From: Geosiphon pyriformis uo1
Lineage: Eukaryota; Fungi; Glomeromycota
Direction of reading: 5' to 3'
DNA length: 12,666 nucleotides
Assembly (NCBI GenBank): GCA_016748015.1
Contig: JAAOMT010000391.1
Location: 16,909-29,574, forward strand
This document shows, piece after piece, positions 9,962 through 12,666 of the stretch. Made by a program: the position numbers and the translations under genes. The stretch's first letter is position 1, and each line of letters opens with the position of its first letter. The notes beneath the pieces are model-generated. The model was not told the DNA's origin and did no database searches. It saw only the letters and a list, made by a program, of their open reading frames with translations.

Positions 9962-11982
9962 AAAAAAACTTTTTGTTTTCTTAATTTTATGATCATAATC
10001 AGAACAAAGAGTAAAAAAGCTGTATCTGATATCTGTTCTAAGATATCTAATAAGATTTCAATTAGAAGAGCTTTCTCTATCATAGAGGCAACTAGACAGA
10101 ACGTTTTAAAAGCTTTTTTTTTACCCAGTAATTATAATAAGCTGCCTTTAGTAGCCACTGAAGCAATTTCTTCATCTTTGACTGGTTTCTTACCAGTCAA
10201 AGTTCTCTTGAAAAGACACACTTGGGTTAGTCCCAGTGTTGCTTCCACTCCTACTAAGAGCCCAAAAGTGTTTAATAACAGACCAGTTAACAAACTGGTC
10301 TTCCCTTTTATGGTTTCTTCATCTGGTGCTGCTAGCACCTCCTTTTCAAAAAAAATGGTCAAAAAGATCAAAAGTTCAGAAAAATGGGGGCAGTTATTTG
10401 CCTCTGCTATTGTTACACCGAACCCCTTTGTGATTCCCAATGAGATTTTAGATGAGATCTCTGTAGTATTGTTTGACATATTGTTCAAGATAAACCAAGA
10501 TCAACCACTGGCTGTATTGTCAAATATGGTGTCTTCTGACAGATTATCACCAGTTTTAAAAGCAAAACAATCTCTTTCTGTTGGGTTACCTGTTTTTGAA
10601 AACTGAGCTGATCAAATGGAAACTGAATTATCTCCTTTTCTAGTTTTTGGTGCTGCTTTTAGTAGTGCTTAGAAAACTATTATTAGTCATCAAAGATTTG
10701 CTACTTTTAAGATCAAATTGGCTTATGTTAAGACTGTTTTTCAGTTAGTACATGGTTTCTTGGGTGTAAAGTCAATATCAAAAGACAATGTGAAGCTGTT
10801 TTGTGTGGAGTTTGCTTCTCAAGTGTTTTTGAAAGCTGCATTTTTGGTTGAGCTTATAAGCTCTGTATATTTGGGCACCCTCAAAATTGCCAAGTCTTTG
10901 GTAATTTCTGAGTCTGATTCCTTTTCTGCTGTTGTTGCACTGTGTAATATGCACTTGAACGTGTTTACTACTGACATTAAAACAGCTTTCAGTGTGTTTG
11001 GTAGTGTTACTCGTGTTGTACTGAAGTCTACTAATATTTGGGAGTATGTGGTAGTTTATTTAGAAAAGTTGGACTATGTTGTATTTGCTTTGAATTATTG
11101 GTCAGTTTTGGTAGACAAAGATAGTGTTAAAATCCTCCCTCTGATGAATCAAAATGAGACTATTTTGTTTTATAATAAGTTTAAGACCAGATTGGTTAAT
11201 CTTCTTTCTGGTTGTACTGTCTTTAAGATTTGTGATCAGACATGTTTTATTCTTTATTTGCCTGATTCTGGTCATTGCTTTTGGTTTGCTCTGGTTACAT
11301 TTGATTCTCAAGTTGATTTGAATTCTGCAGTTGTTAAAACTGGTACTCTAAGAAAATGCCGTATTTGGTGGGAAATCTCTGGTTGTTGGCGATGCTTCAG
11401 GTGTTAAAAAGTGGGTTATTTAGCTGTTAACTGTAAAGTTTTTCCATCTTTCCTTTCTAAGGCTTCCAAGATGTTTAATACACGTTTTGTAAATAATGTT
11501 TCTTATGCAAAAGCTTCTGCTTTCCTGGATTCTTCTGAGTTTTCTTTCCTAGTGGTTCTTACTTTCTTTTCTATAGTTTTTGGTGATTTCTTGGTGTCTT
11601 TTTGGTTGGCTTCTTTGGAATCTGATTTGGTCAAGCTTTTTGTTTTGGTTGAGTCTATTGTTAAACCAGTTAGTTCCTTAGTTAAGTTGTTTGACCAGTT
11701 TATTAATAAGATTTGGTTTTAAGCAGTACATTTGGCTTGAAGGTTAATGAAGTTATAGTGCATATGAGTTTTTTTAGTAAGATTGTTGGTAAGTTAAGAA
11801 AAGAAGTGGTTTTTTTAAAAAAAAAATGTTGCATGGAGGATATTGATATTTCTGGTAATTTAGAACATTCAGTTGGTTTGGATGATGAGGTGTTTTTTAA
11901 CTTGAAGTTTATTTGGAAACATGAGTCTATTGATGTTAAAACTAATGCCTTGAAAACAGTTGAATGGTTGGTTGGATTGGTT
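9962..11982 (+). mobile_element. 5' part of a non-LTR retrotransposon (LINE) nested in gypsy pol and truncated at its 3' side by telomeric repeats
   Basis: Abrupt rise in GC at ~9990; gypsy homology stops at ~9960 at a TTTT/AAAA junction; ATG at 9989. No ORF2 or poly(A) follows; sequence passes directly into TTAGGG at 11981. Confidence 0.8.
9989..11982 (+). pseudogene. LINE ORF1 (gag-like nucleic-acid-binding protein: Ser/Pro-rich N-terminus, two RRM-like segments, CCHC zinc knuckle, coiled-coil-like C-terminus)
   Basis: Track ORFs 9947-10606, 10718-11407 and 11411-11722 are all one frame, broken by TGA 10604, TAG 10670 and TAA 11405. Knuckle CFRC*KVGYLAVNC at 11393-11434 is CX2CX4HX4C with Q>stop and H>Y. 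RRM-like DIKTAFSVFGSVTRVVL...YVVVYL and FALVTFDSQVDLNSAV. After a frameshift near 11709 the frame continues DLVLSSTFGLKVNEV...ALKTVEWLVGLV into the repeats. Confidence 0.8.
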
Positions 11983-12666
11983 AGGGTTAGAAATAAGAAT
12001 AGAGATAGGGATATTTATAGGGTTAGGGATATTTATAGGGATATTTATAGGGATAAAGATATTTATAGGGATATTTATAGGGATATTTATTGGGATATTT
12101 ATAGGGATAGGGATATTTATAGGGATATTTATAGGGATAGAGATATTTATAGGGATATTTATAGGGATATTTATTGGGATAGGAATAGGGATAGGGATAG
12201 GGATAGGGATAGGGATAGGGATAGGGATAGGGATAGGGATAGGGATAGGGATAGGGTTAGGGTTAGGGTTAGGGTTAGGGTTAGGGTTAGGGTTAGGGTT
12301 AGGGTTAGGGTTAGGGTTAGGGTTAGGGTTAGGGTTAGGGTTAGGGTTAGGGTTAGGGTTAGGGTTAGGGTTAGGGTTAGGGTTAGGGTTAGGGTTAGGG
12401 TTAGGGTTAGGGTTAGAGATAGGGTTAGGGTTAGGGTTAGGGTTAGGGTTAGGGTTATGGTTAGGGTTAGGGTTAGGGTTAGGGATAGGGTTAGGGTTAG
12501 GGTTAGGGATAGGGTTAGGGATAGGGATAGGGATAGGGATAGGGATAGGGATAGGGATAGGGATAGGGATAGGGATAGGGATAGGGATAGGGATAGGGAT
12601 AGGGATAGGGATAGGGATAGGGATAGGGATAGGGATAGGGATAGGGATAGGGATAGGGATATGTAT
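11981..12666 (+). repeat. Telomere-type G-rich hexamer array (TTAGGG / ATAGGG / ATATTT-ATAGGG mosaic)
   Basis: 114 hexamers plus 2 nt in unbroken register, G-rich strand running 5'->3' to the window end. Decayed units 11981-12010; ATATTT/ATAGGG zone 12011-12178; (ATAGGG)12 at 12185-12256; (TTAGGG)26 at 12257-12412; mixed 12413-12520; (ATAGGG)23 at 12521-12658; ATATGTAT at the end. Confidence 0.93.
12011..12178 (+). repeat. Two copies of an 84-bp (14-hexamer) higher-order repeat
   Basis: 12011-12094 and 12095-12178 differ at only two positions (12023 T/12107 A; 12056 A/12140 G); both end with the rare variant ATTGGG. Confidence 0.9.

Follow-up and report, generated by a model that had tools for sequence, protein, structure and literature searches.

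The window, that is, the whole 12,666 nt stretch of DNA that we analysed, is the right end of contig C581, and it finishes in a telomere array made of three hexameric words, ATAGGG, TTAGGG and ATATTT (abbreviated A, T and x when we give block orders). This telomere array is genuine. It comes from an early-diverging fungus whose DNA is very AT-rich, and its combination of two repeats, or three words if ATATTT is counted, characterises the genome as a whole. Within the literature that we searched, a genome that carries ATAGGG and a 12-nt word (ATATTT+ATAGGG) beside TTAGGG at every chromosome end appears to be undescribed. The reading that we favour, with a probability of about one half, combines a telomerase that adds TTAGGG with a variant-rich inner satellite that is reshaped by duplication and exchange. 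The original prediction, in which co-existing telomerase RNA templates take turns on this end, is only partly supported, because it depends on two features of this contig: a block order unusual in the genome, and an end that is probably not the tip of a chromosome.

Structure of the terminal array

We read the sequence over 11400-12666 and parsed it into hexamers over 11975-12666. From 11981 to the last base there is a single 6-nt register with zero indels, and all blocks described here are on the forward strand. The array starts (11981-12004) with one TTAGGG at 11981, followed by the decayed units TTAGAA, ATAAGA and ATAGAG. In the inner zone (12005-12184) the 12-nt word ATATTT+ATAGGG is repeated; a few of its units carry G>A or A>T variants, and a single TTAGGG is also present. 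Then come a block of twelve ATAGGG units (A12, 12185-12256), a block of twenty-six TTAGGG units (T26, 12257-12412), and a mixed zone (12413-12520) with the order TTAGAG, A, T5, TTATGG, T4, A, T3, A, T. The outermost block of the contig is (ATAGGG)23 (A23, 12521-12658). After it the contig has a tail ATATGT AT (12659-12666), which reads as an ATATTT-like unit (a single T>G change separates it from ATATTT) and the first letters of a further one. The A12, T26 and A23 blocks, the mixed zone and the unbroken register are exactly as originally predicted, in count and in position. What that description lacked is the 12-nt zone, which it did not name, and the last 8 nt of the window, which are not ATAGGG.

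Tandem Repeats Finder calls an array at 11999-12661, and the GC skew across the array is +1.0. We have here a short G-rich tandem repeat at the end of a sequence, with its G-strand running 5' to 3' toward that end, which is the configuration of a telomere. The contig itself comes to its end at the ATATTT-like unit. Of the blocks beyond the inner zone, the outer half is 67% ATAGGG.

On the inner side of the array lies a subtelomeric dispersed repeat with no recognisable protein domain (10253-11795, forward strand). A copy of this repeat, 73% identical and in the opposite orientation, is found beside the telomere of C334, and a Pfam scan of the ORFs of the subtelomeric repeat gives no match. In sequencing run X1, obtained from the same sample, 10000-11400 is a very high-copy repeat with copies that differ almost only by transitions. 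Intergenic DNA of the window has 8-18% GC. The claim that transition decay cannot account for the T/A difference between the two telomeric units is upheld.

Run X1 includes an exact 158-nt unitig over 11876-12033, which covers the start of the array and includes the first A, T and ATATTT units. The comparison with reads covered the window up to 12064, into the inner zone of the array, and over that range runs X2 and X3 have no sequence placed on the window. A basecalling artefact was considered for the units themselves and rejected, since the units are found on either strand and at left as well as right contig ends, and the exact X1 unitig contains the first of each.

Telomere arrays across the genome

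We surveyed the complete assembly (128.3 Mb in 792 contigs) and tokenised 30 arrays, located on contigs of 2 kb to 2.3 Mb. The same repeat is present at many chromosome ends, with the G-strand forward at right contig ends and reverse at left ends, as telomeres require. The mixture of ATAGGG and TTAGGG is thus not restricted to one locus, and inspection of the other contig ends finds it genome-wide. There are 865 four-unit windows of TTAGGG and 562 of ATAGGG, so that both units are co-dominant. All units stay in phase in the surveyed arrays, and the assembled arrays are fairly uniform in length, about 250-770 bp.

The ends have a common layout. Decayed ATAGGG-like units are followed by an (ATATTT+ATAGGG) zone, found at most surveyed ends, then by an ATAGGG-rich zone, and last by a TTAGGG-rich outer zone. 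The unit after ATATTT is of ATAGGG type in 233 of 236 cases and is never TTAGGG, so ATATTT+ATAGGG behaves as a single 12-nt word. G>A decay falls mainly in the inner zone of the arrays. If we define the outer zone as the part of an array outside its last ATATTT, the outer zones hold 884 TTAGGG and 594 ATAGGG units (about 40% ATAGGG). The other variants at position 1 in these outer zones are five GTAGGG and two CTAGGG.

If each outer zone is divided into halves, the mean ATAGGG fraction is 0.55 in the inner halves versus 0.32 in the outer halves, and the inner half is the richer one at 23 of the 30 arrays. At 21 of the 30, TTAGGG forms the outermost run of three or more units. Across the genome, this is the arrangement of a proximal variant-repeat zone, with variants inner and canonical repeats outer. 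In the window that order is inverted. ATAGGG units are found outside the longest TTAGGG run at about half of the ends; the window has 26 of them, the highest number in the 30 arrays, which makes it the strongest exception. The proposal that distal ATAGGG reflects the current template therefore generalises from an exception. Co-existing templates would place both units at the extreme termini with no gradient, and the gradient that we find is better fitted by a layered history of repeat types.

Two interstitial arrays, in C629 and C6, have unique DNA beyond them. Both are decayed and both contain the two units, so the mixture of ATAGGG and TTAGGG is old and not a change in progress. This goes against the other proposal made for the window, a telomere-sequence transition that is under way or a recent switch.

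Clustering, alternation and duplication

The two units are strongly clustered. We count 351 runs of T or A, compared to 620 in within-array shuffles (z = -17), and the non-randomness that had been noticed in the long pure runs of the window is confirmed for the genome. Run lengths are bimodal: half of the runs consist of one unit, and a heavy tail takes in lengths of 12-40 units. None of the pure runs is longer than 37 units (222 nt), many are just under that length, and those of ATAGGG reach 33 units. There is also an excess of strict alternation, with seven stretches of at least seven alternating units where a first-order chain expects 0.12. The double alternating unit has 46 matches in the genome. 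Clustering together with excess alternation is not what independent choices at a single template position would give. Misincorporation by telomerase shares one property with these arrays, as ATAGGG, the main variant among the canonical repeats of the outer zones, differs from them at position 1, like the rare GTAGGG and CTAGGG. It would also produce variants at low frequency and placed almost independently, whereas here we find 594 ATAGGG versus 884 TTAGGG units and the clustering just described.

Three contigs point to duplication or exchange within arrays. The inner zone of C732 has a tandem duplication of about 45 units (about 270 bp), and C37 has a shorter one. In C731 the order is (ATATTT+ATAGGG)3, T37, (ATATTT+ATAGGG)5, and then a mix of T and A, so that a block of inner type is found outside the T37 run. 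Amongst the 30 arrays, no distinctive blocks of tokens are common to different ends beyond generic patterns.

Contig tips

Eight other contigs carry short non-telomeric tails (AGA, AGATG or TGATG), and all eight tails come after TTAGGG-type units. AGA is also how a widely used Illumina read-through adapter begins. By this inference, the eight tailed contig ends may be physical DNA ends. In three of the eight, ATAGGG units are found within the last 10-15 units. The tail of the window is unlike these, as its last 8 nt are ATATGT AT, and ATATTT-like units are characteristic of inner zones. Because the window contig has no adapter-like tail and stops in an ATATTT-like unit, A23 is probably not a chromosome tip.

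Telomerase genes and candidate templates

A profile search of the genome for the Telomerase_RBD family identifies two loci, in C572 and C608. The C572 locus has matches to both Telomerase_RBD and TERT_C in open frames. The C608 copy has 71-84% DNA identity to C572 and no TERT_C match, and when it is aligned to the C572 frames, stops and frameshifts appear throughout. The TERT inventory consists of one intact-looking gene (C572) and one pseudogene (C608).

The template search used six boundary-anchored patterns over the assembled sequence, and it kept isolated matches of 13 nt or longer. Those template-like matches that lie in non-coding DNA of typical composition are all of TTAGGG type, and the assembly has no ATAGGG-type match of that kind. 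The proposed genome search for CCCUAA versus CCCUAU templates thus yields candidates for the first but none for the second, at that length and in that class of DNA. Several other matches were discarded. ATAGGG-type or mixed matches lie in long ORFs (C348, C600), at the edges of arrays (C731), or on small contigs with 43-47% GC (C60, C73, C82, C111) that may belong to another organism. The four matches to an ATATTT-containing template are a TATA-like motif of a dispersed repeat.

The best candidate for a telomerase RNA locus is C779:409676-409688, which is TTAGGG-type. It is at the start of an ORF-free island with 35-51% GC, and the predicted fold (z = -4.3) would leave the template in an open loop. 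The candidate has a tandem duplicate that does not include the template segment, and there is no paralogue of it elsewhere in the assembly. An Rfam scan of four candidate loci reports no telomerase RNA family, and only a weak HDV-ribozyme-like match. Amongst matches of at least 13 nt in the assembly, we find no pair of telomerase RNA genes or alleles whose templates differ.

These results bear on the alternative that survives best, in which telomerase makes both units. It could use two RNA templates, from paralogues, alleles or different nuclei, or read one RNA in two registers, for instance with a 12-nt template that contains each of the two units once, and the type of each block would be set by the template or register used in a given extension event. 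We consider this a tentative possibility. A more explicit version, in which telomerase actively writes TTAGGG, ATAGGG and perhaps ATATTT+ATAGGG, using two RNAs or alternative registers, such that each extension results in a pure block or a 12-nt alternation, is doubtful. The recurrence of ATAGGG near T-terminated ends and the excess of 12-nt alternation keep the both-units alternative alive; it is also consistent with ATAGGG outside the long TTAGGG runs at about half of the ends (some of it near adapter-tailed termini), with run lengths divided between singletons and a long tail, with a phase that is kept throughout, and with the co-dominance of the two units. What argues against it is that the isolated templates in typical non-coding DNA include none of ATAGGG or ATATTT type at 13 nt or more, that the C779 candidate is without a paralogue in the assembly, and that only one TERT looks intact. 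A random alternation of templates would also not be expected to produce the gradient from inner ATAGGG to outer TTAGGG, nor to have every adapter-like tail placed after TTAGGG units.

Assembly of the outer blocks

Three contigs, C28, C530 and C732, have differing inner arrays, yet their last 46-56 nt are identical. Scaffold joins made with runs of N pass through telomere arrays in C731, C681, C44 and C629. The identical tips, the ceiling of 37 units in pure runs and the N joins indicate that the order and length of the outer blocks may be in part assembly products. Carried over to the window, the proposal would be that the units are real, and that the outer blocks of this contig owe their order and length to the assembly. 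The words are common to all telomeres, and a path could go from a collapsed TTAGGG run into the ATAGGG run of another end or of an inner zone. Besides the observations above, with many runs just below the ceiling, this is suggested by the adapter-like tails, which indicate contig ends built from short reads, by X1 pieces that across this region are short unitigs, and by the ATATTT-like unit that follows A23, which is what an assembly path returning to an inner zone would show. It is contradicted by the 30 end arrays, which all differ and have no long distinctive blocks in common, by the private variants TTAGAG and TTATGG in the mixed zone of the window, which could anchor reads, and by the interstitial arrays, where the same mixing is flanked by unique DNA. 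On this evidence we judge such an origin for the outer blocks of the window unlikely.

It is very improbable that the ends are kept mainly without telomerase, by recombination that spreads variant blocks along the array as in ALT cells or yeast survivors: the block duplications and the inner-type blocks outside TTAGGG runs would agree with it, as would the general rise in variant repeats in human ALT cells (PMC3919612), but the genome has an intact-looking TERT gene, the assembled arrays are short and fairly uniform, and the outer zone is consistently TTAGGG-rich.

Comparison with known telomeres

Human telomerase, using a single template, makes the position-1 variants GTAGGG, ATAGGG and CTAGGG (Lee et al. 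2014, PMC3919612), and GTAGGG clusters in blocks in human telomeres (PMC3919612). The arrays described here belong to the same hexamer family and vary at the same position amid canonical repeats, including rare GTAGGG and CTAGGG. In human telomeres the variants are a minority, whereas here ATAGGG makes up about 40% of the outer-zone units, dominates the inner zone, and forms pure runs of up to 33 units. Vertebrate telomeres have proximal variant zones with TCAGGG, TGAGGG and TTGGGG blocks (cited in PMC3919612). As in those zones, variants here are inner and TTAGGG is outer, and the pattern is blocky and specific to each end. Unlike those zones, the variant is at position 1, there is a 12-nt ATATTT+ATAGGG word, and at half of the ends the variants return beyond long canonical runs.

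Plasmodium, TT(T/C)AGGG, and Paramecium, TT(T/G)GGG, have degenerate telomeres that are copied from a single template and in which the units are finely interspersed. In common with them, we find two co-dominant units that differ at one position and keep one phase. The difference is in the long pure blocks and strict alternations, which neither an independent choice nor a first-order chain reproduces. A simple wobble opposite one template base cannot give a T/A alternative.

In fungi, Rhizophagus irregularis has TTAGGG-type ends, and TTAGGG is the only repeat reported (PMC10234402). It belongs to a related fungal subphylum and shares the TTAGGG-type ends, with no ATAGGG or 12-nt word mentioned (PMC10234402). 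The literature that matches ATAGGG together with telomere is mainly human, and there are no fungal telomeres among the matches listed. A metagenome scan for four ATAGGG units reports a telomere with the order T10 A5 T5, from an organism that is unrelated and has 76% GC. The same scan reports a 180-kb contig that ends in pure ATAGGG units.

Discussion

In the explanation that we prefer, TTAGGG would be the unit added at the physical ends by a single working telomerase, and ATAGGG would be a position-1 variant that became fixed in the inner part and was amplified there. The inner and middle zones would change as satellites do, through tandem duplication, unequal exchange and the copying of sequence from one end to another. 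Such a process would generate the long pure blocks, the 12-nt alternation, and the occasional inner-type blocks outside a long TTAGGG run. The A23 block of the window would be one of those displaced inner-type blocks, and the contig would break off within that block, at an ATATTT-like unit, rather than at a chromosome tip. As a displaced inner block, A23 would be uninformative about the current template.

We count in favour of this TTAGGG telomerase with an inner satellite the presence of correctly oriented arrays throughout the genome, the gradient along the arrays, the T-type tails, the ATATTT-like tail of the window, the duplications, the clustering, and the interstitial fossil arrays. To these we add the one intact-looking TERT, the isolated template-like matches in non-coding DNA, which are all T-type, the inner G>A decay, the human position-1 variants, the GTAGGG and CTAGGG units of the outer zones and the metagenomic T10 A5 T5 telomere. 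Four observations are against it. The ATAGGG units outside the longest TTAGGG run at about half of the ends are difficult to account for unless addition is ongoing or recombination is frequent. At 40% of the outer units, ATAGGG is far too common for ordinary misincorporation. The excess of strict alternation could be a sign of a 12-nt template. Finally, there is no unique marker that proves any block to have been copied between ends.

For the window, the practical consequence is one of caution, as the outermost ATAGGG block should not be taken as the product of the current template. For the genome, ends of this kind could show how much sequence freedom at position 1 is tolerated by telomere-binding proteins, and they could show how the inner zones of telomeres become satellites. 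If telomerase truly writes both units, they could also show how the choice of template or register is controlled.

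Candidate telomerase genes

We find two loci for the telomerase protein TERT in the assembly. The copy at C572:750500-760499 (locus L040) has open frames with matches to the RBD and TERT_C domains. The copy at C608:674500-684499 (L039), adjoined by a Vps54-like gene, has a DNA identity of 71-84% to the C572 copy, and is broken up by many stops and frame changes. For the RNA component, the candidate is a GC-rich island without ORFs at C779:409600-410640 (positions 1400-2440 of L042; GC 35-51%), a putative gene for telomerase RNA whose template would be of the TTAGGG type. The island includes CCTAACCCTAACC, which the predicted fold places in an open loop (z = -4.3); after it comes a tandem copy, about 545 nt long, from which the template segment is missing. 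Positions 2445-2612 of L042 give a weak HDV-ribozyme-like match (27.5 bits, under the family threshold). This match overlaps with a fragment of 123 nt whose identity to the 5' end of the C572 TERT gene region is 86%.

Contig ends, joins and interstitial arrays

At eight contig ends, those of C42 (L031), C334 (L035), C391 (L075), C578 (L067), C634 (L069), C635 (L070), C778 (L079) and C393 (L080), the last TTAGGG-type unit is followed by a non-telomeric tail, AGA, AGATG or TGATG. These tails may be adapter remnants at physical DNA ends. The left ends of C28 (L061), C530 (L066) and C732 (L073) have identical outermost 46-56 nt and different inner arrays, as would result from either end-to-end copying or a common assembly path. 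In C731 (L054, L048), C681 (L071), C44 (L032) and C629 (L068), runs of N join scaffolds right at telomere arrays, which suggests mis-scaffolding via the telomere repeats; C731 also has a run of 37 TTAGGG units with an (ATATTT+ATAGGG)5 block outside it. Interstitial arrays, in which unique DNA follows the repeats, are found at C629:164000-164460 (L068) and C6:2350-2560 (L074). Both include ATAGGG and TTAGGG units together with G>A decay, and are fossil chromosome ends.

Dispersed repeats and GC-rich contigs

Positions 10000-11400 of the window belong to a repeat family of very high copy number in X1, a public sequencing run of the same sample, where the differences between copies are nearly all transitions (C/T, G/A). 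The strand as read is strongly skewed (G > C and T > A), and a Pfam search of this repeat finds no domain. Another dispersed repeat, present at C572:1093515, C783:485141 and 494959, and C64:4283 (L081-L084), carries the TATA box-like motif CCCTATAAATATCCC, whose likeness to the 12-nt telomere word ATATTT+ATAGGG is by chance. Four small contigs of 8-9 kb, C111, C60, C82 and C73 (L044, L046, L047, L049), have a GC content of 43-47%, far above the remaining genome, and may derive from another organism within the sample.

ATAGGG units in metagenome telomeres

Amongst the metagenome contigs, SAMEA104315420__coassemble_76 (180830 bp) has an end (1-60; L092) made up solely of ATAGGG repeats. There are at least eight of them, oriented as in a telomere, and they adjoin unique DNA with a GC content of 46%. 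The contig may come from an organism whose telomere is ATAGGG-only. Ga0206682_10116380 (GC 76%), from an unrelated organism, has a telomere (1150-1302 of L099) of ten TTAGGG, five ATAGGG and five TTAGGG units, so ATAGGG blocks within TTAGGG telomeres also occur elsewhere.
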